Below are positions 3,001-42,186 of a stretch of 64,000 nt of DNA, in pieces. A program made the position numbers and the translations under genes. The number at the start of each line of letters is the position of its first letter. Position 1 is the first letter of the stretch. The notes beneath the pieces were generated by a model. The model ran no database searches, was not told the DNA's origin, and was given only the letters and a program-made list of their open reading frames with translations. Source of the DNA: Lepidodermella squamata (lineage: Eukaryota > Animalia > Gastrotricha); the NCBI GenBank assembly GCA_047495785.1, contig JBLDXI010000043.1, positions 310,001 through 374,000 on the forward strand, in the 5' to 3' direction.

Positions 3001-5221
3001 ACTTGCTGTCTTTATTTTTTGAGAAATTTATTTTGACAATTTAACAATCTTGTGGCTTCGATTTTCACGAGAACATCACTTGATTTAGATCGCGATCATT
3101 TTTCTTAGATTCAAACCCCGACAAATCGCTTTGGATATTGACTATTGTCATAATCTGTTGTCTAATTTTACGATTTATTTCCCCTAAAACAGCCATTGGT
3201 TGCACGGCCTGAACGATCGAACGCCAGGCGAGGCTGAGAACTGCGTAGTCTGCGTCGACGAGCGAACAAACGACTTCGACCGCGACCTGCCGCGGCCGCG
3301 CATCTACGCCGAACACTACCAATCACCCGCCGCACCCATCAACCCATGCTCATCCGCCCCGGGCACGTTTCCAATCATGACAGCCGGCTATTCGTTACTG
3401 CACCTCGAAGACACGCGAGCCGTAGTCCAAGACCTAGGCTCAGCCGGGTCTTGCCTACCCCGCTTCTCACCTGTCCCATTCTTAACCTGCCCGACTTTCG
3501 GATCCTGCTACGCCAAGGAGCGCCAGACCAAGGCGGCGTGGCTGAGCGGGCTATGGGCGCCTCCGATGGGTGCTTCGAAGAGTTCGATGAACCTAGCGAC
3601 AAGTCCGAGTGTCCTATCTCGATGCAGTATCTGTATATCGGACGCGCCTGTTGTGACGATTCACAGCCATACTACGCTGGTTCCGACGTGCCCGGCTAAG
3701 GCGGGCAAATGGGTGGCGCTGTGGAGTGGTTACAGCTATTTGGGCCATTTCACGAATGCGGCCGGTGGGCAGCAGCCGTTGGATAGTCCTGGGTCGTGCC
3801 TTCGCGAGTTCATGACTCCGGTTTACTTTGAGTGTGCTGGCGCGACGGGCGAGTGCCGATTCCAGGCTGATCAACACGAGTAAGTTGATAGACTGATTAA
3901 ACTAGATCGCTGTGAAAGCAAACACAGGGTGGATTAAGACTAGGGGAATAAATATAGGAAGGGAGGGAACGAACAAGGGGTAATTGAAAGGATAGGAAGG
4001 GAAAGGAAGAACAGGGTCCTCTGGAAAAAGAAGGTTAATACTGTTGGGCGATGTAGAGAATAATAGAATGTAATTTGCAATATGAGCAATGAAGACAAGG
4101 TGAAAGATGGAGAGTCATGAAGAGGATGGATAGGTTTTAATGGTGAGATATGAGGAGAGAGAACGCATGCCTGAGCCCTGAGCTTCATGAGAAATCCGGA
4201 ATATGAAGTTTTGACGGAATAGGGAGAGGGAATTGTTTAAAAAAAGAAGTAATGCGAAATGGAAAAGGAAAGGGAGGGGAATAGGGTAATGGAAAAGGAA
4301 AGTAAGGATAAAATAGATACGAAAAGAAGGGAAGGGGAGGGAAGGCAAACGAAAGAAAAGGGAAGGAAGGGGAAAGGGAAAGAAACGAGAAGAGAATGCC
4401 CCTTGAAGAAACGAAAAAAGCGGAAGGTGTTGAACGCGCGTAAGAGGAAGAATTGAGAAGACAGGTTTATTACAAAAAGTAAAGGACAAGAATAAATGTT
4501 TTTTACTTGGCTACTCGTCACCTTGAAACTGGCGTAAACAAACCGAGCTATTCAATGGCGCAAACGGATAGTAATGTACAGAGAGCTATATGAAGTTTTT
4601 GTAGCCGGAGTAATCTGAGAATCATAGAGAAAAAAATGACCAGAGTAAGCACTCAAGCTAAAATTGCAGAATCTTAATTTTTATTAAAAGTTGAATTCTG
4701 TTGTTCACCAAATTTTGCATGCATATAGAACGCGAGCTGCTCTTTCACGCGGTTTAAGATTTGAGGTGGGCAACCCGTCTGTTGTTACGATACCAAAACC
4801 TCGTTTTCACTATGGTTTCATTTGATTTTGATGAGATCAAGACTGAGCAGCAATTGCCCACCTCAAAACCTATCCTATGTGAAAGAGCAGCTCGCGTTCT
4901 ATATGCATGCAAAATTTGGTGAAAAACGGAGATAAGTTAACTTTGAAACAAAAATGAAGATTCTGAAATTTTAACCTTGAGTGCTCACTCTAGTCATTTT
5001 TTTCTCTATGCTCAGAATGGAGGTCCCAAGCGAACCTTATGAGAAAACTTTGATTAACAATAACTTTGCTTTCTGTTAGTTTCTGGCTTGCCGCATCGAA
5101 CAGTGCTGAAGCGCCGGGTTTGCAGCGCAAAATGCGTCAAACTTTGACGATGGATCGAGGCTCGCAAACTGCCGGTCAAATCAGCCGCTGTGTTGTCTGT
5201 AAAATGGTCATCAACAACTAA
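1..5221 (+). CDS. Type IV collagen alpha chain, 3' part (end of Gly-X-Y region plus two tandem NC1 domains); exons <1-152, 217-313, 1550-1958, 3193-3879, 5080-5221
   Basis: Starts with GPPGPGIRGEKGSRGPRG. NC1/C4 motifs follow four times: (VVHTQS..LWTGYSFL..GQDLGRPGSC..WLL..SRCAVC), (LWSGYSL..SGSCLQKF..HWL..CVVC), (EHYQS..GYSLL..QDLGSAGSCLPRF..WLS..SRCSIC), (IHSHT..LWSGYSYL..LDSPGSCLREF..FWL..SRCVVCKM*). All introns are GT-AG and phase-consistent; stop TAA at 5219-5221. Confidence 0.92.
500..1320. repeat. Foldback/MITE-like element in a collagen intron: ~80-bp imperfect inverted arms (~500-585 and ~1175-1260) plus a 20-bp tandem array (5 units, 1221-1320)
   Basis: The reverse complement of ACTTTTTCTCGCAGTATAATTTTAAATAGCGCAAATTGCCTTGCAAATTT matches AAATTTGCAACAAAATTTGCGCTAATTTAGGTTATACTGCGAGAAAAAGT. 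A TACTGCG..AAAAG unit repeats with period 20. Confidence 0.65.
3940..4470 (+). repeat. Purine-rich low-complexity tract (GA-rich) in a collagen intron
   Basis: Long runs of G/A (ggaaaaggaaagggaggggg...). The ORFs here are compositional artefacts. Confidence 0.8.
4614..5016. mobile_element. MITE with ~150-bp terminal inverted repeats, in the last collagen intron
   Basis: CATAGAGAAAAAAATGAC...CACCAAATTTTGCATGCATATAGAACGCGAGCTGCTCTTTCAC is mirrored by GTGAAAGAGCAGCTCGCGTTCTATATGCATGCAAAATTTGGTG...GTCATTTTTTTCTCTATG. No coding capacity. Confidence 0.8.
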
Positions 5222-11170: not shown

Positions 11171-14100
11171 ATGTTCCAGAGGTTTCAATCATTCTCCGAG
11201 TTCAACAAAATAAAAAAATTAGGTAACGGCGCCTTCGGATCGGTTTGGCACTGCATAACGGACAAAGATGTTGCTGCCGACTATGCTGTAAAAGTCGTAA
11301 ATTTGAGCGCGATTCAACGGAACTATGAAAAAGATCCAGCAATGGCTAGGAAACTAGTCGGTTTGGCCTGCAGTGAGGTTTTTTGTTCATAAATTTGTAA
11401 CAAGACGTTGCGATTATTGATTCTTTATCACAGCATGCCAAACTCCACAATGTAAGACACGTAAACATAGTCGCGGTTTACGGCGCGTTTGAAGGTTAGA
11501 CGCAGACTCGGAGCACTGTTAAAATACACAAGTTGTTCTTAAAAACTCCCAGAAAATTTGCTTGAAATTGACGATACGAACCAGGGTAAGAACAAATGGC
11601 AACAGGATGATAGAATGTACTACCTCGTCATGGAGTTTTGTCCTGGCGGAGATTTGGAAGACTACATTAAACAAACCAAACAAATCAATGGAACCATTGG
11701 AGAACAACTGCTAAGGCATTGGGCTCGCCAATTGGTATCGGCCATACGCTGTCTGCATGAATGTGGAGCGCTTCATCGGGATATCAAACCGAAAAACATC
11801 TTCCTATGTGACGATGGGAAAACTGTCAAGTTGGGTGATTTCGGATTCACGAAAATCTATGATGGGTGATTCTTGCGCAACTTTTGCATCGCGCCCACTC
11901 AACCTATTACTTTTCAGGTCGTCAAGCAGTACTACCTTTGGACTCGGAACGCCGCTTTACGCTGCGCCCGAAGTATTTAAGGAGCAGAACTCACCTGCCA
12001 GTGATTGGTGGTCTCTTGGGGTCACGTTGTTCGAATTAGCTCAACTTCGTCTACCTGTAAATCGTAATTATGCGTATCATGGCTCTTAATTTTCATAATT
12101 TTTACAGTTCGAAACTACTTATGATATTATTAGGTAAGTTAAAAGACCTGCAATGCTTCTAAAATATTATACAATATCTGGGAGCTTTGTAGCGGATAGC
12201 GGAAAATATTCGCCTGAAGGCCAGCTATGGAGACCTGAGGCGCAGCCGGAAGTCGGAATAGCGGCCTGAAGGCGAATATTTGACCTATCCGCGTAAAAGC
12301 TTCCAGATGATATAGTTGCTATCCGGATCACATTCCCCGACTATCCTCCCGAAACACCCAATTTTCGTTACAATAGAGGTAACCATCTCAGCCGAAATTA
12401 TCGAAAATAGCGAAAATGAAAAATCCAACTTAAAATTGTGCATCAAAGTTGCAAAAGCGAATGATTTTCAAACGCTAATCATTTTTCACTTTTTCGCTGC
12501 GATTTGAAAATGCTTTTTCACGCCCGTCCGCATCAGCATGGATCGCATCAATTTCGGGCAAAACGTAAAGCCTATCTCTCGAATCTTTCAGCCGTTCAAT
12601 CTTAGAAGCCAGGCTGCTAATACGCAAGAAGAATTCCCTGTCAACAAGCCAGTCACCCAGCGATGATGGTAGCGAAACGGTGTCGGCTGGCGACTTGTTT
12701 GCTGTAACATCCTCTCTTGGCGCCACTCCGTTTCTCGATTTGATCTGAGCCCGCCCCAGAGCAAGATCGAGCGCAAGTTGCGGCTGGCTCAAGTCTCTAA
12801 GCAATCGGCGATGATTCTCGGCTACGGTGGATTTTCTGCTTAATCGAACGTAATCCAACTGCCAAAACGTCTCGGCCCGCTTGTTCTCGTGCCTTTGCTG
12901 CATTCCCTTAATTTTGTTAATTTTCTCGCAATTACCGAATAATAAAATGTAGGGGGTCGCGGGGGTTTCGGCGAATCCGTATTTCGTGACTTTCGTTTCC
13001 GTGCTCAAATAAATCGAAAATTGGGGTGAATTCTGCCAAAATTTCGAGCCACGACCTGAGTTTAAATCAGCCCGGATAGCGTGATATCCTGGCTCAAACA
13101 GCCCGGGATAGCAGAAAGTATTCCGGCCTGTTTTGCGGCGTATTTTCCACTATGATCCGGATAACCTGAATTATCTATGTAAGCACGACAAATAATTTTG
13201 ATGTATCTCTTTTATTCAGGGAATCAGCACAGCCAAAATTTGATCTCAGATTATCTCAAGAGTTCCGTAACTTCGTACTATCTATGCTACGAAAAGATAA
13301 ATCAAGACGAGCTGGCGTGGATGACTTGCTAGCAAGCTCTTTTTTGACGCTGAACCAACATACCGAAAGAGGAAATACATCCACTCCAACGAACGATAGC
13401 AGCACTGTCATAGATCCTGAAGCGGCGTTGAAGGTGAGCGTAAATGATTTGTTTCGGTATCAATTCTTAAATTCTAACTGTTATCACTGACAGCTCCTTT
13501 TTAAATACTCGAGGCAACGAACAATGTTGCCAGAAATTGAAAGCCTGCTGGAGGATAGGCGACTGAATTTGGACGTGAACAGTCGGAACGACGACGGCTT
13601 CACGCCACTGATGATTGCAGCTCAGGAAGGATTTGATGAATTTATGAAGCCATTAGCAGAAACGCATGGAGCCAACGTTGACTTGGTGGACGATCAAGGC
13701 AGAAGTGCAGTTTACTTGGCTGCTAAAAATGGACATTACAAAGTTGTTCAAGTTCTTTCCAAAGGTTTGAGGGCGAATGTCGAAGTAGCAGAGAATAACG
13801 GTGTTACGCCGGTTTACATTGCTGCTCAGAATGGTCACCTGGAAATCGTGAAGCTTCTCGCTGGAGAATTCAAAGCCGATGTGAATGCAGCTAGGAATAT
13901 GGGTGCTACGCCGTTATGGATCGCTGCTCAGAATGGTCATTCGGAAATCGTGAAGCTTCTCGCTGGATACTTCAAGGCCGATGTAAACGCAGCGACAAAT
14001 GAGGGTGTTACGCCGTTATACATTGCTGCCCAGCATGGTCACTTAGAAGTCATGAAGCTTCTCGCTGGAGACTTCAAAGCCGATGTCAATGCAGCGAAAA

Positions 14101-14423
14101 ATACCGGTGCTACGCCGATTTTCATTGCTGCTCAGAATGGTCACTTGGAAATTGTGGAATTTCTCGTTGGAGATTACCAAGCCGATGTGAATGCCGCCGA
14201 CGAAGCTGGTGTTACGCCGTTGATGATCGCTGCGTATAACGGTCAGCCCCGTGTTTTAGATTTCTTATTGAAGTCACGTGACATAAACGTAAACGCCCGA
14301 ATGCTGTCATACGGATGGACGGCTTTATCCGCAGCAACGAACTGCAAGACTGATGTGGCGCCTGATGATAAGCAGAGATGCATCGAGCTATTGCTGATGG
14401 CTGGAGCCAGTGGTCCGACTTGA
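11171..14423 (+). CDS. NEK-like Ser/Thr kinase fused to 8 ankyrin repeats; exons 11171-11377, 11434-11494, 11553-11865, 11918-12056, 12108-12133, 13220-13433, 13494-14423
   Basis: Kinase motifs GNGAFG, AVK, VMEFCPGGDL, HRDIKPKNIFL, VKLGDFG, GTPLYAAPE, DWWSLG and subdomain XI (FRNFVLSMLRKDKSRR). All splice sites are GT-AG and in phase, leading into TPLxIAAQNGHLEIVKLL repeats. Confidence 0.88.
12168..13165. mobile_element. ~1-kb non-autonomous repeat inserted in kinase intron 5, with a terminal ~150-bp imperfect hairpin
   Basis: Second copy at 6509-7111. 12168-12225 is an imperfect inverted repeat of ~12263-12315. TATCCGGATCA (~12319) is the inverse of TGATCCGGATA at the other end. Confidence 0.8.
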
Positions 14424-15321: not shown

Positions 15322-16182
15322 TCAGGTAATTGATGTACCCAGGCGTTTTCCGGTCCCATCAAAATTAGCAGCCTCGTCGTCGGCGAGTTCTGGGTCTTCT
15401 TCTTCCCCCTCATCGATAACAAAAAGGTTCAAACCATTAGAATCGTCAATGCGGATTTTGTGCTGCAACAATATAAATTGGGACGACTCGCGCGTCCAAC
15501 AAGTGGGCACAGTCCAAAATCGGCGAAATCGAGCCTTCAAAAGGCCGAAAGCGTGCTCGACTTTACACCTTGTTTGTGAATGTTTGTAATTATAATTCGC
15601 TTTTTCATCATGATGATCACCGTCGTTGAGTTCAGCCCTGCGAAAAGGAGTCAACAGCCAGTCGTATAACGGGTATGCCCCATCGCCTAGCAAGTGATAT
15701 TGCTGGCCAGGAATGAAAGCTGCTAATCGGTGAGATATTTGTTGAAATAGCGGCGATTTGTTGAAAACAAATCGGTCGTTGTTCCCACCGGCATAACCAC
15801 AAAACACATCGATGAATTTTCCGCGTGAATCTGCCACAGCCTGCAATACTACGCTGAAAAAGCGCTTATAATTTATGTAGGCATTCGGATTTTCGAGTAG
15901 AGCTGATGTCGGGATGTGGCATCCGTCGATACACCCAATTACCCCAACAAAGCCATGGCTAGCCTCGAAAAGAGCTGCGATTTCGTCGCATTGTTCGGCA
16001 TCCGGCCATTTTATGAAATGATGCACATTATCTGCTAATCCACGAGTCACCCAGTCACCCGCCTCACCATGCGCAGTGCAGTTGAGGGAGCCGTAGACAA
16101 CACTGTAACAGATAGACGCAAACGATCTTTCTATAGTGAATTTATTCGAGCTGTTATTGCAAAGAGTGCGGCACGCGACCAC
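15322..16182 (-). mobile_element. PIF/Harbinger-family DDE transposase relic (HARBI1-like, DDE_Tnp_4); homology about 15400-16050
   Basis: GVIGCIDGCHIP, YINYKRFFSVVLQAVADSRGKFIDV, GGNNDRFVF, LLGDGAYPLYDWLLTPF, YNYKHSQTRCKVEHAFGLLKARFR. No ATG start, N-terminus truncated, TIRs not identified. Confidence 0.85.
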
Positions 16183-17994: not shown

Positions 17995-18313
17995 AGGGTT
18001 AGTATTAGAGCGTGTCCTATAAGTAACGCCAACAAAAGAAATACCGGGAAATGGATGATCGGAAACTCTAGAACGAACTTCAAACCTAAACCTGTCGCTA
18101 TGTAAGTCCTTCAGTCTAGCACTCTCGGAATCTGCAATCTGTTAGCGAGAATTATTGACAACTCTTTTCCTGTTACATATCAGTACAATCAATTTTGAGC
18201 GAAAAGCATGAATCAATAATTGTTCTTGCTGTCTGCCTTTATCATGAAGGAATAAATTTCATCTATTTTTTTATTATTTATTCAAAATTTGCATGAAAAC
18301 GCATACTACCAAG

Positions 18314-20725
18314 TCACACCATTTTGTACCGACTTCGTAGTATCTTAGAAACCTCTGAATTATTCAAGCTCTCAGCTATCATCAGGGCAGTTTCGCCTTT
18401 GTTACTCCTCACATGAATATCAGCGCCTTTAGACAGTAAGTATCTCACAGTTTCAACGCGATTGAACTGGGCAGCGACCATGAGTGCCGTCCATCCGTCT
18501 TTGTTCCTCAAATTCACATCGGCCAAAGGCTGATCTGGCTCGTCAGTCTCGAATTCACAGAGAAGCCTAACGCAGTCGGATTTGTTATTAGTCGCGGCGT
18601 AGTGTAGAGCAGCAAAACTGAACTCATTCTGCAGGTTGACGAATCGTTTCAGCTCGACCATAGCCCTAGCCTTATCCTGGCCGTTTTCAAGCTGCTGGAA
18701 CCTTAATTTCGCTGATAATGCCAGACTAAGAAGAGAGCAATGGCTTTTGAGACTCAGAGGGTGTATACAGGTATCGTTATTCGAAAAAGACCAGCCGTAG
18801 ATTGTCTCGCCGTGTCGCTTTCGGTTAAAAACTGTGTTCAGAAGAGCTAATGGGTCGCAAACCGATCCGGATAAGAATTCAACTACTGCCGTCCTCGTCC
18901 CAGCGCTACAAGCCACGTAAAATCCCTGAAGAAAACGAGGGTTCAATTTTTTCAGGCACCTCTATTCAGCCTTACCTTCTCCTGCCGTACGTCTGGAAGA
19001 GGGAAAACCTGCAAAAATTGCTCGATTTAATTCCTGAGTCAATGCGAAATTCTTACAGCTTTCGGTCGGTGAATACAGGCTCCCGGCCATGTCCAGCTTC
19101 CATTTTTCTGACAGGTGATCTCCGAATTTCCCCATGGCTCGAAATGCGCGTTGCATAGCAATCTCCTCACTGATCCCACTGTCGATGGCCCTGGTGTCAC
19201 AAATCCGTTTTGAATTGAAGGAGCGTCGCCACAATTTGTAACCATAGCAATGATGTTAGATTTGGAAAGGGATTTCAGAGGGATGCAATGGCCTGGTACA
19301 GTCCACTCTCCGTTAGCTTGGCACGTAATTTGGTCCATTCCAGTGACCTCATGGCCCTGATCGCATTCCAAGAGCCATGATGATTCAAATTCCATTGTGT
19401 TGTTTGAGTTTTTGAGTTTCCCTCTGGTTACAACCGGCAACGGTCCGCATTCTGTTATTAGGAATTTAGCTTTAGAATTCCTATTATTAGAGTAAGACTT
19501 ACTTATTGGTTGACACTTGCCGCTAATGGGCGGTAAAAATGGCGGGAAACACAAGACTAGAGTGACCTTAGACGTGTAGGAATAACCTTGATTGCAGTGA
19601 ACCATGATTGCTTGCCCAGTTTCGATAATTCTTCCAACAGATACGATTTCCTCTGTGTCCTGGCCAGTTTGAACTTCAACTTTAGTGAAATAACCATAGC
19701 TAAGACTCGGAACAGCACAAAGTTCTGCTGTGGCAGAAGTTGGTGTTATTTCGTAGGCTGCCGTAGTAGTAGTATGAGGCTGAAGGTCAGTATTATTGAC
19801 GATCCAATCAACAATTGGGCAAATTGTATTAAAGCTTCTGTTAAAGCTGCCGGCAGCTAACCCGAAAAGGTAAGGATGCGCGGAATCGTTGCACATCAGA
19901 GGGCTTCCTTTGTCGCTTTCACACTCGCCAACGCTAGCTACCCATCTTTCACCGGTTGAGATGAGCGAAGAATTGTCGAGGTAAGTTACTCTCAATCCAG
20001 AATTTGAACAGTCTAAATTTTGAAATGTATTAGCTTTTCTCAGCGCGAGAAAAATGATTACTGTTGCTTTCAAAGCCCCAGCTAGCAATTATGCCCTCGC
20101 TGCAAGAGTGAGAGGGTAAACATCCCGTAAAAGGATCGGGCAAAGATATGGCAGCGATTTTCGCCGTAAATTTCTCTATTGGTCTTCTCAGGCGAACAAG
20201 AGCGTAGTCGAAAACGCCTCCCTCGTCGAAATCAGGGTGTATTACAGGCGGTAAAGTTGCGAAAACCTCCTCAGCGCCGGGCTCGAATCTCAGAGCTGTG
20301 TTGGAACGACCGAGGAAAGCTCTGAGCCTAAAGAGAGTAATAATTAAAATCCGTTTTCCAAATCATCCAGCTTACAAAGTAGGTGTTGTCCCATTTTTCG
20401 ATAGACAGCTAGCTGCTGTGATTAGCCAGTAACGAGATAGTAAAGATGCTCCGCAAAAGCTGGGCACGTCGTCCTCCGGGAATACAATTTCGAGAAAGCC
20501 CTTGAAAACAATATTGAATTTACAGAAAATTGATTCTGTTTACATTACCAGCCATGGGAATTCATTTCGCAGCGCTGCTTCTGCAACGACATGGAAATGT
20601 GTATTGAAGGCCAGCAGCGAAATCCAAACAATAAAGAACTTTCTGCAGAAGCATCTGTGTTTGCCAGAACTTAATGTAAGACTAGAAAAAGAGCTAGAAA
20701 GTATTGCACAAGGACGCGTGAGCAT
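18314..20725 (-). CDS. Fusion gene A: inactive trypsin-like domain - Thr-rich linker - 3x CCP - ankyrin repeats
   Basis: NEFPWL|GFLEIVFPEDDVPSFCGASLLSRYWLITAASC, FDYALVRL, CESDKGSPLMC, then CCP modules. The donor after HRPKA (intron 19056-19009) leads to a 33-nt exon VFPLPDVRQEK (19008-18976), intron 18975-18926, then the ankyrin exon (AALHYAA, GWTALMVAA, GETALMIA) to the stop at 18314. The exact start codon is uncertain. Confidence 0.82.
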
Positions 20726-21500
20726 CTTTTGCCAAATTACGCGCAGAGATGAGCCTCATGTTGTCGCGAATAATGAAGTTCTGTTTTCTTGAAAAATGCT
20801 TCCCTGATGATACAAAACAAAAGAAATTAAAAAAAAGAAAGACAAAGTGGATGAACTTTTAACAATAAGTTTTTTCTCAGGTTTTCATTGTCTCGAGTCT
20901 GAAGGATTTTGCTCGCGGAATGAGATTTAGACTCTTCCAATTGTTATGAAGAATGACTCAGCATACATAAGTATATCAAAACTACGACAAAAAAACGAGC
21001 TAAACGATCACTTAAGGATCCACAAGATCAATCTCTTCGCATAAAGGAAATTTGATTCGACTGAATGGAGTCTCTTGTTTATGAGGGTTATCAACCATTT
21101 TGCAAAATTTCTTCTTACTTTCCCAATTAAAAGCAATGATGCATCATTCCGTTCATAAAATGCCCGTCCCGTGGAAGACGGACAAGTAGTTCAAATCTTT
21201 GCCCTCAAGACAGCTGTGCCGAAAATATCCGAGTCTCTGAAATCGAGGCCGCCACGCGAAATTCTTTCACAAACACATGCCTTTTAGCTGATTGAAACAT
21301 AGTACGTTGTCTGAAGAGCCACAATATCGAATTTCACCTCGAAATCTCATGGGAAAAGACAAGTCACCAAACAACTCTTCAAGGACACTTTGGACTAAAT
21401 ACTAAATTCGGAAATTCCTAGAAAAAATGTCAGAAAATAAGGCAAAAGGTGTTGATTTCGCTCTTTATTATAATAAAACAGGGTTATATAAGGCGGCTTA

Positions 21501-24087
21501 TTAACTGGCTGCTCCAAATTGCTGCAGCGCCTCGATAACTTCGACGTTACTCAGCGACTGGGCAATTTTGAATGCAGTTTCGCCCTTCTCACTCCGCTGG
21601 TTGACGCTTGCCCGTTTCGTTAGTAGATATTTAACAATTTCCGCGCGATTCCACTGAGCCGCGACCATGAGAGGGGTCCAGCCGTCTTTATTCTTCAAAT
21701 CAACATCCGCAAGTGGCTGATCGACCTCATTTGTCTCAAACTCCGACAGCAGCTTAACACACTTTGACTGGTTCAAAGTAGCAGCGTAGTGAAGAGCTGT
21801 AAAGTTGTACTCGTTTTGAAAGTCGACGAATTTTTTCAGCTCACGAAGGGCTCGCATTCTATCAAGGCCTTTCTGCTGCATGCGAGCTCTTAGAACCAAC
21901 TCCATGATGTTACAGTTGCCCCGGAGGCTGAGGGCGTGCAGGCAGGTGTCGTTGGTTGAGACCGGCCAGCCTAGGATTGTGTTGCCGTGGATGCGACGGT
22001 CGTAGATCGTGCTGACTAGGGCGAGTGGGTCGCAAAAGGTGCCGGACAGATACTCTTCAACCACGCTCAGGTTACCTGAGCAGCAAGCAGCGTAGAACCC
22101 CTGGGAAGAGCAGTGGCAAGTAGTGAAAAAGAGATAGCTGGAAGTTACAAGGGAACATACCTTTTCTTGCTGCAAGACAGGCAGTGGCAGAACCTGAAAT
22201 AACAAACAAATTCAAAGTCAATAATTGTTTTGTAAATTGAACAGTTTTTATTTTTCTGATTTTTTTTAATTTGAGTTTTCGACCACGAGATTCTCATCAT
22301 CAGAAATTCTCAGCTACTAGAAACTAGAATACTGGAATTTATTTACTAGTGATTTCTTACTCGTTGAGGCCGAAATACACAAGTTCCAGGCTGCGTCCAA
22401 GTCGCATTCGCCTGGCATATAATCGTAGAAAATCCAACTATTTCAAACAACGGATCGCACAACAGCATTCGAGTTGCCCCAGCACTTGAAGACCCAGTTC
22501 CTATAATCCCATTGACAACGACTGGTGTTGGTCCACATGTAACTTCGGACTTGGCCGTTGTTACAATTCTAGTAGGCTCTTGTAGACACTGACCAGGTTT
22601 CGACCAATCTCCACTGGCTAAACATTGTATTCTATCAGATCCGGTCAAGCTGTAGCCGGAATCACAGACTATCGACCAATAGCTGACGGTATCGGTCGAA
22701 CTGTTCGAACTTAGAAGTCTTCCATTCGGAATCAAGGGTAAAAAGCCACATCCTGATAAATACGCAAACATTATTACGAGAGGAACCTGAGAATCTCTTA
22801 CTTATCGGTTGACATCTCCCGGCAATTGAGGGTCGGAAAGGAGGGAAGCAAACCACAGATATGATTTTAGATGAATAGGAATAACCAGCTTTGCAGCGTA
22901 TCAACAAAGCTTGGCCTACGTCAACAATAGTCCCAACTGCAGTTACGTTCCCCGTATCGTCACCCGAATCAGGGTCCAATTTTGTGAATTGACCATTTTC
23001 GAGGAAAGGAACCATGCAACTACCCCTGGTTGTCGATGGCGGCGTAGGACGTTGCGTAGTAGTTGTTGTTGTAGTTGCTGTAGTTGTCGTAGTAGTGCTT
23101 GTAGTTGTCGAGGTGGATGTAGTTGGGATTTCAATGTCTGTATTCACTAGGATCCAATCGATCACCCTACAAACGGGGCTGAACACCCTGGGCGCAGGGC
23201 CTTCAATAGTACCGTCGACGAATGAAGTAACGCCGAATAGCCTTAGCTCGCCGGAATTCGTGCACATGAGCGGACCACCGGCATCTCCATCACATGCATC
23301 GACTCTTCCGATCAAACAAGTTTGCGTGGCAGTCCCGCCCCATGTTAACGAGCTTTTCGATCTGAAGGCAGAACAATTCTGGCTTTGTTGAATGTTCACA
23401 TTAGTTTTTCTCAGGACATCGGAGAGACAATCTAAACAAGCTCGGATGAGAAGACAGGAGAAGAATGAAAATATTGGTATCTTACTGAGGCCTTCAAATC
23501 CCCAACCAACTGTAGTGGCATTGCCGCAGTAATCCAAGGCACTGCAGGACCTCGGGAAATCAGGGAATCGAATTGGCCTAATTTTATCGTTAATCGGGGT
23601 TGGCTTTCGAAGTTTGACAAGTGCAAAATCGAAATCATTTCGATTGCCAACTGAGTTGTAGTCGAAATGCACGATAGGTGGAAGGGCAGCAAAAATCTCC
23701 TCTGATCCGCCTTCAAACCTCAGACTCATCGAGTGTCGGCCGAGAAAAGCTCTTAGACTGCAAAAAGCAGGTACATTAATCTAATGAAGCCATTTTTCAC
23801 TTACAGTGTTGGAAAGGATCCATTCCTGGAGACGCAATGAGCAGCTGTGATGAGCCAAGCTCTCGATAGTAAAGTAGCCCCACAAAAACTTGGCTGGTCG
23901 TCTTCGGGAAAGGCAATTTCCAGGAATGCCATCCACGGGAACTCGTTAGGCTGCGCATTCTCACCGGCGTTTGAAAAATCCTGAGAACAACACAATTATT
24001 CTGGCCCAAGATAACGAAAGGCAACAAAACTTGGATTGCTATCAAAATCGCGAGCAAAGCTGCCAGCAAATTGGCTTTGTTAGTCAT
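21501..24087 (-). CDS. Fusion gene B: signal peptide - inactive trypsin-like domain - Thr-rich linker - 3x CCP - ankyrin repeats
   Basis: MTNKANLLAALLAILIAIQ|DFSNAGENAQPNEFPWMAFL..FCGATLLSRAWLITAAHC, DFDFALVKL, DACDGDAGGPLMC, poly-Thr, three CCPs. The donor after FRPQR (intron 22360-22194) leads to a 33-nt exon VLPLPVLQQEK (22193-22161), intron 22160-22101, then the ankyrin exon to the stop at 21501. Confidence 0.86.
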
Positions 24088-24511
24088 TGCCGTGTTTCCC
24101 CAGTGCCAAAGAATGTCAATTGTTAAGCCAGTGGTCAGAAGTTAATATATAGCTACTACTTGCCTGGCGTGTGTTTAGCCACTGTATAACGAGTTGTAGT
24201 AGTATGAGATTAGTAGTATGTATAGTAGTAGTGGCTAGGCGTTTATGAGATGACAGCTAAGGAAATAACAAATGCATCAAATAATTAGCGTGTTATCACG
24301 TGTGTGAAATGCATATTATTAGTTGACTAAATTGCCAAAACAACAACTGGCCATCTCAACTCATACTCGGTCAGTACCTGGTTCATAGGCTCGAACATCG
24401 GATACGTTAGGTTACTCAAAAATTGATTTATTATGTCATAAAACAAGATTCTTCTAACTGAAAGAAAGCTTTGATTTTCGTGCTATAGTGTTTTGTGGAT
24501 TTTGATTCGCC

Positions 24512-26834
24512 TCAAGAGATGATCTGCGATCCCTGACGTGAGCAAGGCGCTGGTTGTTCAGTTGTTTCATTCGCCACCTGAGCTGTAATCGCGGGTTCAA
24601 CTTGCGGCTGAGATTCATTTCTAGGGGTAGGCGGTCCTGGTTTTCGACCAGCAACTCCTACTACAACAGGGCCAGTTACAATCGTGGCGCCTTCAGGGTG
24701 CTCCTTCTCCCATTCAACGATCATTTCGGCAGTTCGAGCTTTAACTGGGATGGTTTGTAGGATGACCTTTTTGAAGGGCGGACAGTTCGATGAAGTCCTG
24801 ATGAAGTCGAGAAATTGGAGGAGAGAGTTCTCAGTGAGCAAGTTGCCATCAAGCTAGAAAAAATCATAGATTAAAACTTGACCAAAATTTCAAGGAATTT
24901 TTTGATATGGGAATGCGCAATAACTGTTAGAAGATTTAGAGCTTACATTGAGTTGTTCCAGAGCGTCATTTCTAGCGAGTCCCTGCCCAATCAAAATGGG
25001 CGTGCTCTTATCTGACAAGCGACTACAAGTTATCTCTAGCGAAGTCATCACATGGTTCGTCTGCAGCATCTCCGCAATATTCAGCGCAACTGAATCATCT
25101 GTGCCATTAGCTGTCAACGAGAAATGCCTCACGCCCAAGTTCTTCTTCAGCCCATTGAATACTAAGCGACAGCCTAGTGGCATGAAATTGTTCCATGACA
25201 AATTGAAATCTTCTATAGAGTCGTTGTATCGAAGTGAGTTGGCGATTTCATCAGCTGCTCCGTCGCTGAGTTTGTTGCGGGACAGATTGAGGGATTTGAG
25301 AGTGAAGGTCACTTCGAGGATAGCACCGAGATCTCGACCAGCTCGGTCGTCGAGGGAATTGCCGGATAGATTTATCGAGACGATATTACGATCTGAAGAA
25401 ATATATCATAGGTAGAATCCATAAAAATTCATTTTCTTCCAATCATCGGGTTCAAACAGCTTGATTTTCAGTGTTCAGTATTCAGTTCAAAATTGTATAA
25501 ACTGAAACTAAAACAGTCTCTCCGTATTTAGATTCATCATTCAGCCCTAATTAAAACAACTCATTTTCACTCGCATTTGGAATGTTTTGCATAAGCCAAA
25601 TAATGTAAATGATGCAACACTGCGTCATTTACCTGATAGCGTATGAAAGGCGAACACGGAAGGTATTTTACGAAGGGGACATAGCTTAGCGGGAAAGCGT
25701 TCGGCTGCAAACCGAAAGAACCCCGGTTCAAATCCGGGTGTTCCCTATGCTACTTTTTCCCCATATCTTTTTGCCAATTTTTTTGTTTTAATTTTGACTG
25801 TGTGGAGGTATTTTGAATAAAACCGTGTTATTCTAGGACAAAAAATCAGTCACCGTTCAGAAATAAAGGATATTTGAGGCAGTGGTTTGCCATTTTTAGC
25901 ATATTTTGGTGATTTTGGTGATTTTGCTTTATTTTTGGCGATCGAAAACATTCTTGCTTGAAGTTAAACAATCAGCAAGTAAATTTGAACGCTCATTTAA
26001 CATTTAACATAAAATCCAGGTACAAAGGTTGCCCTTTCAAAAATTACCCTGATGGGCTACGGTATACTACGGAATCGTTTCTTTTCTTCGAAAAATCCTA
26101 GCACCAGTTTCTTGGATAATCGATAGCAGGAGCTCATCTTTATTTCTTCCGTACCCAATTATCCCATTTACTCATTTTTCAAAAGATAAATGCTTACTTA
26201 TGGCAACAAGTTCTGCGACAAGAGCACACACGCCATTGCCCAGATGGTTATCAGCCAGACTCAGATCTCGAACAGCCACATTTTCCTTCAACGCTGTTAG
26301 CAACCACTTCGCACCATCGATTCCAATCGAGTTATCATCCAGCTTCAGACTCGTAATATTCGCATTGGTATGCAGCGCCAGACACAACGGCCTCAAATCG
26401 TTCGAATCAATCACACGATGGCTGAGATTCAACTCTTCAGTCGCCAATTGCCGGACAGCAATGTTCATCGGAATTAAATTGTTCTGCTTTGTCGCGTTTA
26501 GGTAGGTCTCGCGGCCCCAGACGTCAAACTCGCGCTTACTCCGTTCTTCCATCTCGCGTTTAATATCCAGTTTTGTCTCGAAGAACGAACTTTTCCGCCC
26601 AGCCATTTGCAACGCGACTGGTAGAGGGTTTTTGTTGTTGATTGTCACAGCGGTTACTTGACTTTCGATGAAACTCTCCGGAACACTTTCAGTCATAGAA
26701 ACACGCTTTGAGACATTTTCAGAATTTTCGCCGTCTTTCTGCTCAGGGTCGCTTACGGGCAGCTGCTCAGCAGCTTCCTGAGATTCAGAGTTCGGTGGGA
26801 TAGCTGCTGGAGCTTCCTCGGTTGCAGCCTCCAT
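24512..26834 (-). CDS. Leucine-rich repeat protein, LRRC74-like (exons 26834-26198, 25392-24947, 24853-24512)
   Basis: RI-like LRRs (ELNLSHR, SLKLDDNSIG, DLSLADNHLG, SINLSGNSL, SLNLSRNKL, DFNLSWNNF). The YL....N.IP....RQL...ELNLSH lead-in resembles LRRC74A/B. Introns are phase-consistent. Confidence 0.8.
25675..25746 (+). tRNA. tRNA-Cys(GCA), in intron 1 of the LRR gene on the opposite strand
   Basis: GGGGACA TA GCTT AGCGGGA AAGC G TTCGG CTGCAAA CCGAA AGAAC CCCGG TTCAAAT CCGGG TGTTCCC T folds into a cloverleaf with anticodon GCA and discriminator U. An oligo-T Pol III terminator lies just downstream. Confidence 0.93.
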
Positions 26835-30572: not shown

Positions 30573-32873
30573 ATGAGGACTTCATACAAATTAATCTTTC
30601 AGGCTTGCCTTATTCCTCTGCTGCATTGCAATACACTCCGTGATCTTTCAATGCCTGTATTCATACCATTTACGGGTAACTCACCTCGCGATGGCAGCAT
30701 GTGCAGAGCAGCGATGCAAATTGCGATAAACGCCGCCAACAGTCGCTCGGATGTTTTGCCTAGCATAATGCTAAACCCTCAGTATGAAGACGAGGGACAT
30801 CTGGGAGAAAAAGTTCATGAAAAAGTTCTCAATTTCTACTCCGGAGGCAACCATACGTTCAAGTCTCCGCTAGTGGTGGGTCCTTATTTTACGGTGGGGT
30901 TCATTATGTTTCTCTGAGGTTTTGCATTACTTTTTAATCTATAGGCTGGCTGCAGACGACTTGGATCGATCCTCGAATACACTAAATTGGTAGCTATAAA
31001 CACGAACTGCGCCGGATCAATGGAACACTCTGGCTTGAAACGTTATGCCAATATGTACCGACCCCGTCCATCTTCCGAGTTGGCTGCCTTTGTAACTCTA
31101 CGACTGATCAAGGACATTAATCGCTGGGCGAAAGTCGCGATTATTGGGCGCATCGACAACTATCGAGATTTTGAAGATCTTATCAGCACCAACCGGCTGC
31201 TAATCAACAACGGAATTCAAGTCAAGTGGTTGGAAGGCGTTGAAGAGATGATTGAAGATTGGATATTCAAATCCCTGAAACAGTCGAATCTTCGAATAAT
31301 CATTGTTCAAATAACAGTCATTGAGGAGCTAATCAGATTCTTTTGCTCAAGTTACAAATTCGGCATTACTGGTCCGCACTTTGCTTTTATTGTCCAAATG
31401 AGTGCGATTTTCCAAATTGAAGAAATTGCGAATGGTTCCTGCAGCCGAGATGTTATCCAGAAACAAGTGGAAATTACCTTCTGGGTCGGAGCTAAGATTT
31501 TCGCTGTTGAAAACCACGGGAAGACTGACCTTGGTTATGATTTGTCTGAATTTGAGCGAAGGTTTGATGATTTAACAAATTCATCCCGAAAGTCTGGTTA
31601 CATCGAGCGGCATCTGTGTCACGACGCTATGCTTCAAGCTATTTTGACCCTGGATCAAGCGAACAAGTCTCTTATGGGCCAGAATCTTACAATTCTCGAT
31701 TATGCACCACAGCCGAGCTTGGTTGAATCTATTACAAACAGGAGTGCTGGAAATATTGATTTTCATGGGCTGAGAAACAGCCGTTATAAGTATTCACAGC
31801 GTCTCGAGCTGGACGACGAGCCGCTAAGTGTATTCAAATGGAACAGCTCGGTTGGCTACTCTCTTCTCTACGAATTTCGTCGCAACTCAAGCGATGCAGA
31901 AGGCTTGATTTTGCTTAAAATATCCGAGGAGGAGCCATCGATTCGCGACGGTCCGCTAGTCGTACTTTTGCCTACAGATACCGTCATCAATCAACGAATT
32001 TCTGAAGTATTCGGCGCAATTCTGATTCTTCTGAATTGTTCACTCATTTTGTTGCTCGCAAAGTCAGCGATTGGCATTAAACAGTTCAGTGAATGATTTC
32101 TCCTTCTCAATTTCATCGCCTTGGACATTTCTGCTATCTTACTGATTGAAATCGAATCTGGTCATATTGCCTGTGTTTCAGTGAGCATTTTGGCATCCTT
32201 GAGTTTGAGCAACATTCATAGCATGATTTTGTCTCAGTTGATTGTGATTCGAAGGAAATTACGGCCTAAGACTACACAAAAATCACGCCGGAACACCAAA
32301 TCCAAGCTTGGTGTTCCGCAGAGTTCTGAGTTGTCCAAACGAGACAATTTAACGTCTTCGATATTGTGTTTTGGAATGCTAGCGCTCCTCATAATATTGC
32401 TAATTTCACAGCATCTTGTTGAGCCGATACGTGCCGAGATGCGATTTTTAGAAACGACCTACAACGCAACAAATGATTCATTTCTTACACATTATTTCAC
32501 CAGTTGTTCAAGCACTAGTTCGATTTTTTCCAATCTCCTGGTGGCCGCTAATGGACTGGCCATATTGATATCGGGAATTCTAGCCTTCTCCGTTCACCGA
32601 AAGCACAGTTCCGCTTCGATAGCTATGGTCAAAAATTTGGTTTATGCTTCGATCAGCAGCTTGACTTGGCTTGTTGCTTTTGTCTTCGTTGAATTTATGA
32701 TCGCAGGGTCGCGCTATGAATTCTTGATTCTATCACCAATGCTTCTTTGCTACTCGCTTATTTCGGGTTGCATACTGTTGTGGCAACGTCAACTTCAGCT
32801 TTATAAGGCTGTTGAAGCGACGACTCGGAGGTTACTTGGTGCAGGGGTAATTAGGAAGGTGACTTGCCGTTGA
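30573..32873 (+). pseudogene. Divergent class C (GABA-B-like) GPCR: Venus-flytrap/ANF-receptor ectodomain plus TM region, with an in-frame TGA at 32094-32096 (intron 30894-30944)
   Basis: Signal-like N-terminus; VFIPFTG..AAMQIAINAANSRSDVLP; YANMYRPRPS; RWAKVAII; LKQSNLRIIIV; FCSSYKFGITGPHFAFI; HDAMLQAILTL; then multiple TM segments. The frame continues across a single TGA. Confidence 0.75.
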
Positions 32874-33522: not shown

Positions 33523-34863
33523 TTAAATAACTCGAGGTTTAACTTGAATGATTCTGTAAGCTTGGGACGCGTTGATATTTGGAACACTCGCAACAGTTGG
33601 GATTGTAGGAAGTTCATATGGCTGCACCGAGCAACCGAACCGGCTTTTAACGCTCGACCAGGCGGCTTTAATGTCCTTTGTCCAGCCAGGTTTAATCATT
33701 TGAACAAACGCGCCAACTATCATTTGAAGGCAGACGAAGTACATTCCTTGCTTGTGAAGCCAACTTGACGCAAATTTAGGACCGATTTCAGTGTAGAAAA
33801 TCTCGAAGATGAACGAAAACAAGCCGGGGATGTGAAACGAGCAGTATATGAAGAAAACAGCCAATGATTGCTGGGCGAAGAATACTTCACGAGCTCTCCA
33901 GTCTGCCAGTTTAACAGCCAAGATTTTCTGCATGCTTGCGTTCGTGGAATTAGTCCCAGCCGTTCCATTCGTCGAGCTACCCATCATCTGCTTCTTAGCA
34001 TTTCGAATGCACGCGAAGATTTTGTAGTAGTTGTTTGCCAGGAGCATTGCTGGAATGTATACCGCAATAGCGTAGTACATAAATAAGAGGAAACTTGAAT
34101 CAAGCCCGCCAGCAATGCGGTATTGAAAGGCAGTACAAAGCCAAACCGGGTTGCCGTCATTCACGCCCTCAACAGCTATCAGCTCCTTCCTCCAAACTTG
34201 AATGGGATGGACAGCCATGACAAACGAGACAATTACACAACAGAAGAAGAGGCCAACGACTAATCCAAGGAGTTTCTTAGTATTAGCTCGATAGTTTGGG
34301 CTGTTTGATAGGATACAGAGCCTGCGTTCGTACGATATGAGCATGTTCATGAAGGTCCCAAAAGCTCCGAGGATGAAAAGGACCCAGTGAACTCCGGTAC
34401 AGGTAGCATCGCTGGGTTCCCAATATCCGGTACCGAGAGTCATGAGAAGGCCAACTGTGTAGTCTCCAGCGAAGCCAATATTCCGGCAGCCTTCAATCGC
34501 GACCAACATGAGGAAATCTCGCTTTACGCCTCGCTTGTAATAGATCACGCAACTTGCAATTGTTGAAGCGATTACAGCGATGAATGTTACTAGGTACATC
34601 AATGTGTAGGACAGACGGCTTTCATAGGTGTCATATTCGAGATCGTGGTACCAGCCGATGAATTGAGGCCTGGCTTCGTCGTAGCCTAAACCCGGCAGGT
34701 AGACATTCACCCAGGCTCCATTGATTAGCTTAGCCAACGACCGATTCCCGTCACCTGAACGGCCCGATGACGTCAGATTTCTCAATGCACCAAACATTAG
34801 AGAAGATGTTTGGTTGGTTCGATTAGATCCAAAAAGGGCTTGAGTCCCATTAAAAGCATTCAT
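33523..34863 (-). CDS. Intronless orphan 7TM receptor (rhodopsin-like), array member 1
   Basis: Seven hydrophobic segments, N-glycosylated N-terminus, ISYERR (DRY-equivalent), TM3/ECL2 cysteines, TM6 FHIPG. Confidence 0.88.
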   Translation of the reverse strand: MNAFNGTQALFGSNRTNQTSSLMFGALRNLTSSGRSGDGNRSLAKLINGAWVNVYLPGLGYDEARPQFIGWYHDLEYDTYESRLSYTLMYLVTFIAVIASTIASCVIYYKRGVKRDFLMLVAIEGCRNIGFAGDYTVGLLMTLGTGYWEPSDATCTGVHWVLFILGAFGTFMNMLISYERRLCILSNSPNYRANTKKLLGLVVGLFFCCVIVSFVMAVHPIQVWRKELIAVEGVNDGNPVWLCTAFQYRIAGGLDSSFLLFMYYAIAVYIPAMLLANNYYKIFACIRNAKKQMMGSSTNGTAGTNSTNASMQKILAVKLADWRAREVFFAQQSLAVFFIYCSFHIPGLFSFIFEIFYTEIGPKFASSWLHKQGMYFVCLQMIVGAFVQMIKPGWTKDIKAAWSSVKSRFGCSVQPYELPTIPTVASVPNINASQAYRIIQVKPRVI

Positions 34864-37132: not shown

Positions 37133-38455
37133 TCAAACTATTGGTTTGACATTTACAATTTTGTAGGCTTCGGCAGCATCAGGTTTAGACGAAGTCGCTA
37201 CTTTCGGGAATGCCGTCATTGTTGGACTGACACTGATCGATCGGCCCTTCAAAGCTGACCAGATTCGCTTAATATCCTTCGTCCAGCCGGGCTTGATCAT
37301 CTGAACAAAAGCCCCAACAATCATTTGAAGGCAAACGAAATACATGCCGAGCTTATGAAGCCAACTCGAGGCGAATTTCGGTCCGACGTCGAAGTAGAAA
37401 ATCTCGAAGATGAACGAAAACAGGCCGGGAATGTGGAACGAGCAGTATATGAAGAAAACTGCCAGTGATTGCTTGGCAAAGAATACTTCCCGATCACGCC
37501 AATCTGCTAGCTTTGCAGCGAGAACCTTTTGCATACTAGCAGCAGTGTTCAAGGTTCCAAGGGTTCCAGTACCTCCCGAGGATCCACCCATCATCTGCTT
37601 CTTGGCGTTTCGAATGCAGGCGAAGATTTTGTAGTAGTTGTTGGCTAGGAGCATAGCTGGGATGTAGACCGCAATGGCGTAGTACATGAAAAGAAGAAAA
37701 CTCGAATCCAAATTGCCGGAGAGTCGATATTGGAAAGCGGTGCAGAGCCAGACAGGTTTACCATCGTTTACACCTTCAACTGCGATGAGTTCCTTGCGCC
37801 AGACTTGGACAGGGTAGACAGCCATTACGAATGAAACAATTACACAGGCGAAGAATAGGCCAACTACCATACTTAGGAGTTTCTTAGTGTTGGCTCGGTA
37901 GTTAGGGCTGTTTGATAGGATACAGAGCCGACGTTCGTATGAGATTAGCATGTTCATAAAGGTTCCAAAAGCTCCGAGGATGAACAAGACCCAGTGAACC
38001 CCGGTACAGGTTGCGTCGCTTGGTTCCCAATATCCAGTTCCCAGTGTCATAAGTAGTCCAACCGTGTAGTCCCCAGCAAATCCAATATTTCGACAGCCTT
38101 CAATTGCGACCAGCATGAGGAAATCGCGTTTCACGTTCCGCTTGTAATATATGACGCAGCTTGCGATTGTTGAAGCGATGACAACGAGGAAAGTGATCAA
38201 GTACATCAGAGTGTAGGAGAGTCGGCTTTCATACGTTGAATACTCCAAGTTGTGGTACCACCCAATGAATTGTGGGCGTGCTTCATCGTAGCCCAGTCCA
38301 GGTAAGTAGACATTGATCCAAGCTCCATTGATCAGCGTAGCCATCGAGCGATTGTCTTGACTTGTTTGATTAACTGTGGTCAGGTTTCTCAGGGCAGTGA
38401 ACATTGTCGAAATCGAGCTATTTGTGCGGTTAGAAAGCATACTTGTTGCTGACAT
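37133..38455 (-). CDS. Intronless orphan 7TM receptor, array member 2
   Basis: Very close paralog of 33523-34863. Confidence 0.88.
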   Translation of the reverse strand: MSATSMLSNRTNSSISTMFTALRNLTTVNQTSQDNRSMATLINGAWINVYLPGLGYDEARPQFIGWYHNLEYSTYESRLSYTLMYLITFLVVIASTIASCVIYYKRNVKRDFLMLVAIEGCRNIGFAGDYTVGLLMTLGTGYWEPSDATCTGVHWVLFILGAFGTFMNMLISYERRLCILSNSPNYRANTKKLLSMVVGLFFACVIVSFVMAVYPVQVWRKELIAVEGVNDGKPVWLCTAFQYRLSGNLDSSFLLFMYYAIAVYIPAMLLANNYYKIFACIRNAKKQMMGGSSGGTGTLGTLNTAASMQKVLAAKLADWRDREVFFAKQSLAVFFIYCSFHIPGLFSFIFEIFYFDVGPKFASSWLHKLGMYFVCLQMIVGAFVQMIKPGWTKDIKRIWSALKGRSISVSPTMTAFPKVATSSKPDAAEAYKIVNVKPIV

Positions 38456-41249: not shown

Positions 41250-42186
41250 ATGCTGCTTAAATTCGCTATTGTAGCTGCTGTTTCTTATTATCAATTTGTA
41301 GAATCCTGCCCGCACAATAGCCATGGCTATTTAGCCTCGAACAACACTAACAACAATGGCGACATTGTGACCACAAGTGATATCTTGACATTCTACGAAA
41401 CTGGCTCGAAAAACTCGACGAAGGCTGTCATTATCGCCTCTGACATTTACGGCTGGAATAGTGGTCGTAACAGGCAAATCGCCGATCATCTCGCCTCAGG
41501 GGGATTCTACGTCATGATTCCCAAGCTTCTTCAGCCATCTTTCGATGAGGGAACGGACGGCGATGGTCTACCAGCAGTTATAAGTCCAAGCAGAATGGCT
41601 GAGCGAGCAGCTTACATGAAGAAGATCGCGTGGGAAGGCATTGTGAAACCCCGAGTTCAAGAGGCTGTCGACCGGGTGAAGTCTTTCGGAATCACAAAAA
41701 TCGGGATGATAGGCTTCTGCTGGGGTGGTTGGGTCATCATGAAGGCTGGAGCGGATCTCGGCTCAGATTTGACCAGCGTCGTGACCGCTCATCCATCTTT
41801 CAGTGGGGAGCAGAACAATTTCGGCCGGAATATCACTGAAATGATAGAGAAAGTGAAAATTCCCGCCCTTTGGCTGCCGGCGGGCAACGATCCGGCTGAT
41901 TTGTTGGAGAGTGGCGCTTGGTTTCAAGTTCTGAAAAAGAACAGCCCGTCATCTAAGGTTATACCTTTCCCGCGAATGTCTCACGGCTGGGTGCCAAGGG
42001 GTGACATCACTAATCCAACGATTAAGGAAGACGTGGAAAAGGCGGTTAATGACATCACCGATTTTTTCAACGAGAACATGGCAGATACCGATCATACGCA
42101 TACACCCTCAAGTAATTTTAACTATATATATATATTCTGAAATATCTCTAATATTATTTTTCCCAGCAACTGTCGAGGAGAAGTAA
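41250..42186 (+). CDS. Secreted dienelactone hydrolase / CMBL-like alpha-beta hydrolase (probable intron 42112-42166)
   Basis: Signal peptide MLLKFAIVAAVSYYQFVES; DIYGW..RQIADHLA; nucleophile elbow GFCWGG; AHPS; AGND; HGWVPRGD (Cys-Asp-His triad). Confidence 0.88.

Follow-up and report, generated by a model that had tools for sequence, protein, structure and literature searches.

Can an animal protein carry an ankyrin repeat domain out of the cytoplasm, as one module of a secreted mosaic? This question is raised by two tandem genes of like build, here called A and B, which lie on the minus strand between positions 24087 and 18314 of a 64,000-nt stretch of the Lepidodermella squamata genome (hereafter the window; assembly GCA_047495785.1, contig JBLDXI010000043.1, positions 310,001 to 374,000). 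The DNA of the window is eukaryotic and compact, with ~43% G+C and introns of 47–60 nt. A sequence-only reading of the locus had proposed that a secreted pseudo-protease, a Thr-rich linker, three complement control protein (CCP, or Sushi) modules, and ankyrin repeats are fused in a single protein, and that this fusion is duplicated in tandem. We found that A and B are probably functional old duplicates, each encoding one secretory-pathway polypeptide of ~700 aa that lacks a transmembrane segment and ends in ankyrin repeats. The coordinates of all the features are collected in Table 1.

Structure, transcription, and splicing of gene A

The spliced coding sequence of gene A is 2160 nt long, its frame is open, and every intron is bounded by GT-AG. 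We compared this structure to X1, a public run of 2015 labelled "RNA?", using Logan assembled contigs (not reads) aligned over positions 18200–24199. The contigs skip all the predicted introns of gene A (6/6), and all the joints are GT..AG (24031/23980, 23805/23757, 23486/23431, 22802/22752, 22361/22193, and 22161/22100). X1 behaves as RNA, because its depth is zero across the intergenic region 20800–21399 and only ~2 in the bin of intron 5 of A, and because introns are skipped. A second run of 2024 (X2) is probably DNA from a more divergent individual or a sister taxon. X2 has no indels in exons; all those observed are confined to intergenic DNA and to introns 5 and 6 of A, as expected for real introns and real exons. 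Gene A is a transcribed and spliced gene, and an AATAAA hexamer lies 32 nt past the stop codon of its ankyrin exon.

The fusion depends on the junction between the third CCP module and the ankyrin repeats. In both copies the open reading frame (ORF) of the CCP modules has an apparent end, which the sequence-only reading had taken for a GTAAGA splice donor. This can be read directly from the sequence: the CCP3 exon ends in phase 0 at RPQR|gtaaga in A (last exon base 22361) and at RPKA|gtaaga in B (last exon base 19057). The same reading had then placed an in-phase splice through a conserved 33-nt exon, which has an acceptor but lacks an ATG, into the ankyrin exon. Such a microexon is present in the sequence of both genes. 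The two microexons are 64% identical, with a proportion of nonsynonymous differences (pN) of 0.16 vs a proportion of synonymous differences (pS) of 0.84, and they lead in phase 0 into ankyrin exons starting with GFYAAC in A and GFYVAC in B. For gene A, the path is also found in RNA joints, and the X1 contigs match the predicted coordinates 22361/22193/22100 exactly. The joints 22361/22193 and 22161/22100 are carried by two contigs that overlap inside the microexon, and none of those listed spans CCP3, microexon, and ankyrin exon together.

One X1 contig on the microexon of A runs on at 22160 for nine letters, CGTAGAATC (plus strand), which are near but not equal to the start of the ankyrin exon. 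This extension may represent an allele, or it may derive from a paralogue located elsewhere.

Modules and topology of the encoded proteins

The first module of gene A is a trypsin-like (S1A) domain, matched by Pfam Trypsin (PF00089) with E-values of 1.3e-12 in exon 4 and 7.1e-5 in exon 3, and its PDB matches include plasma kallikrein and elastase. In the alignment with plasma kallikrein (DACDGDAGGPLMC in A vs DACKGDSGGPLVC), Asp189 is kept and Ser195 is replaced by Ala (GDAGGP vs GDSGGP). His57 (TAAHC, from the elastase alignment) and Asp102 are also kept. The N-terminus of the domain aligns with that of elastase directly past the signal peptide (SNAGENAQPNEFPW vs VVGGEDARPNSWPW); at the zymogen activation site this alignment has no propeptide, basic cleavage site, or Ile16, and SNAGENA stands opposite VVGGEDA. 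Gene B, aligned to A, reads TAASC, where His57 has become Ser, and SDKGSP, where Ser195 has become Lys and Asp189 is lost. An IVGG activation N-terminus was found in neither A nor B, and neither has the complete His57-Asp102-Ser195 triad. The earlier call of a pseudo-protease is borne out by the loss of Ser195 in both copies and by the missing activation N-terminus, and we regard the two domains as catalytically dead S1A homologues, not enzymes. The proteins also depart from the complement-type mosaic proteases, as the order is protease, stalk, and CCPs and the protease is inactive. In a word-indexed search, the 355-aa protease ORF of A retrieved only weak trypsins, mostly 24–29% identical (horseshoe crab, copepod, and metagenomes), with one short match of 39% identity over a fifth of the query.

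The protease-like domain is followed by a Thr-rich, mucin-like stalk, presumably O-glycosylated, and by three CCP modules per gene, two canonical and one divergent (CCP1). CCP2 and CCP3 of A, both on exon 5, have the Sushi signature, with invariant C, C, C, W, and C in the alignment. CCP1 of A had no Pfam match. Compared with hhalign to a profile built from the window's six unambiguous CCPs, it gave a probability of 52% and an E-value of 1.4e-4. Its AF2 model is all-beta (pLDDT 78), and the best PDB matches of the model are CCPs of factor H, CD46, CR2, and CD55, with TM-scores of 0.55–0.63 and E-values of 0.04 or worse. On the basis of the profile and the model, we accepted the first module as a putative divergent CCP.

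The last exon of both genes encodes an ankyrin repeat domain, with Pfam Ank_2/Ank E-values of 1e-21 to 1e-32. The AF2 model of the domain of A has moderate confidence (pLDDT 70, poor at residues 22–51), and it superposes over its full length on five-repeat DARPins (TMt ~0.8). Residues on the face commonly used for binding by ankyrin repeats (D-G-W-T and L-M-x-A-A) are invariant among A, B, and a third gene of the window, gene C, described below. This conservation suggests a partner common to the three proteins, more than a diversified recognition repertoire. We also considered disulfide stapling of the ankyrin domain, and dropped it as the conserved cysteines occupy ordinary core positions.

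On the Kyte-Doolittle scale, the highest-scoring 19-residue window of A (1.72) is at its N-terminus, which has one Lys (K4) and an h-region of 14 residues and resembles a standard signal peptide. The cleavage site SNA|G was read by the -3/-1 rule, and signal peptides were judged by heuristics, not by predictor output. Each protein has a single hydrophobic segment, which is N-terminal (LLAALLAILIAI in A and FFIVWISLLAF in B). Past the N-terminus, the 19-residue scan found no transmembrane-like segment in A or B, and the next peak is only 1.45, in CCP3 of A. This agrees with the earlier statement that no transmembrane segment lies between the N-terminal signal and the ankyrin repeats. Since no stop-transfer segment follows the predicted signal peptide, the ankyrin domain would be lumenal or extracellular. 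Neither a GPI signal nor a KDEL/HDEL motif was found at the C-termini of A and B, which are hydrophilic (QQFGAAS and SRYKMV).

Copy B, two relatives, and the weighing of the fusion

The frame of gene B is open and all its predicted introns are GT-AG. It is transcribed over its whole length in X1, with a depth of 2–15, below that of A. The X1 joints listed take in none of copy B (11 more joints are not listed), and the splice chain of B is a prediction from homology. In the X1 contigs on copy B (18578–20379) we also observed eight "opposite strands" joints ~100 nt apart, which are probably artefacts of fold-back in the assembly of low-depth sequence.

The A and B proteins are 49% identical, and at the DNA level just three exon pieces can still be aligned. 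In every domain pN is 0.16–0.45 vs a saturated pS of 0.72–0.99 (0.28 vs 0.83 in the ankyrin exon). With nonsynonymous change so much scarcer than synonymous change throughout the domains, both copies are constrained, and the comparison points to an old duplication with purifying selection along the whole length of both genes. The tandem duplication of the fusion thus appears as a pair of old paralogues with the same module order. Their introns have diverged at three places. Intron 3 of B (20013–20061) keeps the donor position of intron 3 of A (23432–23485), with an acceptor ~50 nt further into the A exon; it removes ~17 codons kept in A, and an A-like sequence, ALRKANTFQNLD (compare DVLRKTNVNIQQSQN), is found out of frame inside it. 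Furthermore, B has an intron (20548–20501) inside NEFPW|L-FLEI with no counterpart in A, and A has an intron (24030–23981) between the signal peptide and the protease domain with no counterpart in B.

A tblastn search with the spliced A protein retrieved two further relatives in the window, genes C and D. The CCPs of gene D and the corresponding block of A and B are paralogues that share the phase-1 intron after CCP1, and in gene D a stop and a poly(A) signal come right after CCP3. The existence of a gene made of a signal peptide and three CCPs alone identifies the CCP block as a secretory module. Gene C encodes a basic N-tail (RRLKKTYSANALKR), one transmembrane segment, 11 spacer residues, and ankyrin repeats. 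Its ankyrin domain belongs to the same subfamily (37% identical to that of A), the start of the exon is homologous in position and phase, and the junction REER|NFLLYC resembles QQEK|GFYAAC of A and RQEK|GFYVAC of B. By the positive-inside rule, the product of gene C is predicted to be a type II signal-anchor protein with its ankyrin domain lumenal or extracellular. No separate copy of the protease-like domain was found in the window. The CCP and ankyrin parts of A and B thus also occur nearby in separate secretory genes, and the ankyrin exon acts as a unit of phase-0 shuffling.

The reading that we favor is the following. A cleavable signal peptide would lead a polypeptide made of a dead S1A fold, a Thr-rich stalk, three CCPs, a Pro-rich microexon hinge, and a five-repeat ankyrin domain, and the ankyrin domain would be translocated along with the rest, ending in the lumen or outside the cell. 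Most likely, the protein would act as a non-enzymatic, multivalent extracellular adaptor, in which ligand binding would fall to the dead protease and the CCPs, as it does in haptoglobin and in arthropod serine-protease homologues, and the ankyrin domain would recognize a partner shared across its subfamily. Signal-peptide cleavage, secretion, glycosylation, and any binding function are what we infer from the observed gene, its modules, and its constraint.

Some observations weigh against this reading. X1 consists of contigs and is only guessed to be RNA, and the shorter sides of its key joints measure 32 and 21 letters. The signal peptide is predicted, from a heuristic reading of the sequence. 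The ankyrin exon has no clear sign of disulfide stapling or of other adaptation to the secretory pathway, and A and B have in common a single N-glycosylation sequon (NDT). Furthermore, intron 5 of A is unusually long: it measures 167 nt, whereas the eleven remaining introns of the two genes have 47–60 nt. It has an in-frame stop after four codons and an AATAAA at +18, and intron 5 of B (48 nt) likewise has a stop after five codons and an ATTAAA. Lastly, contig depth roughly doubles from the upstream exons of A to its ankyrin exon, which could mean extra transcripts starting there.

The features of intron 5 and the doubled depth would suit a locus with two products: a short secreted dead-protease-CCP protein ending in intron 5, and a cytosolic ankyrin protein made by spliced-leader trans-splicing at the microexon acceptor, with the AUG supplied by the leader and the fusion as a minor by-product. 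Indeed, among the introns of A and B the poly(A)-type hexamers are confined to intron 5 (three altogether in A), and the phase-0 acceptor of the microexon would be fit for trans-splicing. However, the cis joint 22361/22193 reaches a depth of 12.5, much like the contigs on the exons to either side (9–20), while X1 depth falls to 2.07 in the bin 22200–22399 vs ~16 in the flanking exons, and no loose contig end occurs at 22193 among the 8 of 11 listed. In B, intron 5 is too short for cleavage plus an intercistronic spacer. Moreover, the sequence just before the ankyrin exon shows conservation as coding sequence in all three genes (A, B, and C), and gene C joins the same ankyrin exon to a membrane anchor. 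The two-product locus is the most serious alternative, and we consider it unlikely. The sequence-only reading had named, as an outcome that would overturn it, transcripts that are polyadenylated past CCP3 while the ankyrin exons have their own 5′ end. Such transcripts may exist as a minor isoform, and separate expression of the two halves is more likely in that form than as the main product.

It is also quite improbable that the fusion mRNA is real and the N-terminal segment is no functional signal, or that the protein is retained in the endoplasmic reticulum (ER) or degraded, for example as a secretory granule or ER resident; either way, the ankyrin domain would have no role outside the cell. 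This would be in line with the heuristic basis of the signal, with the atypically long n-region of B (29 residues), and with ankyrin sequences bearing no obvious extracellular adaptation. However, the four-Cys CCPs, the Thr-rich stalk, and the disulfide cysteines of the S1A domain are hallmarks of secreted proteins, retention motifs and a second hydrophobic segment are missing, and purifying selection covers the whole length of both copies. That copy B is a decaying duplicate and A alone is functional seems very unlikely: His57, Ser195, and Asp189 are all lost in B, its intron 3 drops codons kept in A, and it has a lower RNA depth with no joint among those listed, but its frame of 705 codons is intact, its splice sites are all conserved, it is transcribed from end to end, its pN stays well under the saturated pS in all domains, and a pseudogene of such age would carry stops.

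The secreted fusion thus keeps the structural part of the original proposal (one mRNA for A, a predicted signal peptide, no transmembrane segment, and C-terminal ankyrin repeats), together with constraint in both copies, while the role it had assigned to the protein, as a recognition or scaffold protein in immunity, symbiont handling, or mucus, is speculation. A broader idea, which we put forward tentatively and hold to be possible though doubtful, is that the lineage recruited ankyrin repeats for binding outside the cell and that phase-0 exon shuffling then attached them to many secretory N-terminal parts, namely a signal anchor alone, CCP arrays, and a dead protease with CCPs. If true, this would be an extracellular ankyrin adaptor or recognition system without a described animal counterpart, and A and B would be its members armed with a protease homologue.

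Neighboring features and comparison with known systems

The other features of the window are listed at the end of Table 1. The six intron-less ORFs between 33523 and 51400 have the appearance of a tandem array of G-protein-coupled receptor (GPCR) genes, and the two adjacent ORFs with ANF_receptor and 7tm_3 matches are probably one class C GPCR gene. The two multi-ankyrin ORFs lie ~49 kb apart and have near-identical N-termini, MLPEIE[S/K]LLEDRRLNLDVNSRNDDGFTPLMIAAQ. We examined them (at 13524 and 62703) as further secreted members and rejected them, as their upstream exons resemble, by eye, the C-terminal end of a protein kinase; if this reading holds, they would be cytoplasmic kinase-ankyrin genes.

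Table 1. Genes, exons, modules, and other features of the window (positions in the window).
Feature	Position	Strand	Remarks
Gene A	24087-21501	minus	7 exons, 719 aa
Gene A exons	24087-24031, 23980-23805, 23757-23486, 23431-22802, 22752-22361, 22193-22161, 22100-21501	minus	
A signal peptide (exon 1)	24087-24031	minus	MTNKANLLAALLAILIAIQ; predicted cleavage after SNA in exon 2
A inactive S1A (trypsin-like) domain	23980-23133	minus	Exons 2-4, residues ~20-268; Pfam Trypsin and PDB alignments
A Thr-rich mucin-like linker	23132-23025	minus	Residues 269-304, 36 residues, TTSTSTTTSTTTTTTATTTTTTTQRPTPPSTT; direct reading
A CCP1	23021-22803	minus	73 aa, four Cys, without the CCP tryptophan; divergent
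A CCP2 and CCP3	22750-22580 and 22543-22370	minus	Pfam Sushi PF00084, E 6.5e-16, two stretches
A intron 5	22194-22360	minus	167 nt
A microexon VLPLPVLQQEK	22193-22161	minus	33 nt, phase 0 on both sides, acceptor, no ATG; RNA joints
A ankyrin exon	22100-21501	minus	199 aa + stop, ~five repeats; Pfam Ank/Ank_2
Gene B	20725-18314	minus	7 predicted exons, 705 aa; homology-guided model
Gene B exons	20725-20549, 20500-20376, 20327-20062, 20012-19503, 19451-19057, 19008-18976, 18925-18314	minus	Predicted
B microexon VFPLPDVRQEK	19008-18976	minus	33 nt, acceptor, no ATG; predicted by homology
B ankyrin exon	18925-18314	minus	203 aa + stop; Pfam Ank_2 E 7.7e-32
Gene C	60737-60555 + 60468-59833	minus	272 aa; predicted splice junction
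Gene D	6218-5927 + 5867-5473	minus	228 aa, two exons; signal peptide + CCP1-CCP2-CCP3
ORF with two collagen IV C4 (NC1) stretches	3200-3883	plus	E 2.9e-35; fits type IV collagen
Two multi-ankyrin ORFs	13219-14423 and 62580-63962	plus	
Transposase ORF, DDE_Tnp_4 (Harbinger/PIF-type)	15322-16182	minus	E 1.7e-26
RNI-type leucine-rich-repeat ORF	24890-25312	minus	Upstream of gene A, between A and the tRNA gene
tRNA gene	25675-25746	plus	Rfam 71 bits; sole Rfam match
Adjacent ORFs with ANF_receptor and 7tm_3 matches	30987-32873	plus	
Six intron-less ORFs	33523-34863, 37133-38455, 38967-40127, 42520-43677, 45767-46909, 50237-51400	minus	380-446 aa; weak rhodopsin-type GPCR matches
Dienelactone-hydrolase ORF	41250-42140	plus	Inside the GPCR array

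Database searches returned little that is specific to A and B. No close relatives of the two proteins were found in protein collections at lengths of 0.55–1.75x the query, a range that leaves full-length 700-aa relatives outside. In word-indexed searches, the 349-aa CCP-rich ORF of B had no match at 1e-5 and the ankyrin exon matched two generic ankyrin proteins only; a metagenome scan with the ankyrin exon gave one generic ankyrin match, and ESM Atlas look-ups gave generic or uninformative matches. None of eight long ORFs of the window (0/8) was present in an exact look-up in a 15-billion collection, so public protein sets apparently do not include the proteins of this genome. The weak best matches are arthropod proteins, and they are no evidence of affinity. 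An exhaustive HMMER search of the ankyrin exon against 1.84 billion representatives gave 115,639 matches, swamped by giant multi-ankyrin proteins with summed repeat scores, and was set aside as uninformative on architecture. Phrase searches of the literature on extracellular or secreted ankyrin found no Sushi-ankyrin or secreted animal ankyrin protein other than the latrotoxins; such wording occurs in three of 8.4 million papers, and the latrotoxins feature in one of the three. The possibility, raised with the original proposal, that the architecture is already widespread gained no support from these searches, although, with the length range used, Trypsin-Sushi-Ank proteins may exist elsewhere.

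Ankyrin repeats are very common binding modules in animals and are treated as cytoplasmic or nuclear. A secreted ankyrin protein supported by transcripts would add to the extracellular binding scaffolds known so far. The locus is also a clean example of exon shuffling, as the CCP block and the ankyrin exon are found also as separate genes in the same window.

Several known systems share a part of this architecture. Haptoglobin and the masquerade-type arthropod serine-protease homologues are, like A and B, secreted proteins in which a non-catalytic S1A fold works as a binding module beside CCP or adhesive modules. They differ in that A and B have the protease first and the CCPs after it, a mucin stalk in between, and no clip or CUB domain, and we know of no C-terminal ankyrin domain in these families. 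C1r/C1s/MASP, factor B/C2, and Limulus factor C also combine S1A and CCPs in one secreted polypeptide, and MASP-1 is among the PDB sequence matches of exon 2 of A. However, they are active zymogens with N-terminal CCPs, whereas A and B are dead, have the protease first and no activation site, and are fused to ankyrin repeats.

On the ankyrin side, the latrotoxins of widow spiders are secreted animal ankyrin-repeat proteins, as A and B would be, and they appear among the PDB matches of the ankyrin exon (entries 9go9, 7ptx, and 7pty). Latrotoxins are large pore-forming venom toxins with ~20 repeats and no classical signal peptide. Unlike A and B, they have no protease, CCP, or mucin module, and they show no specific sequence relationship to them. 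DARPins, the best structural matches of the ankyrin domain of A, are likewise compact, stand-alone, five-repeat binders that work outside cells; they are artificial, whereas the natural domain has a poorly modelled insert of 30 residues in its first half and a long extra helix. Lastly, Notch and TRP channels have extracellular modules and ankyrin repeats in one polypeptide, as in A and B, but there the ankyrin repeats lie in the cytoplasm, on the other side of a transmembrane segment, while A and B have no such segment. An extracellular mosaic with a dead protease is a known kind of protein; the predicted extracellular ankyrin domain is the notable addition.

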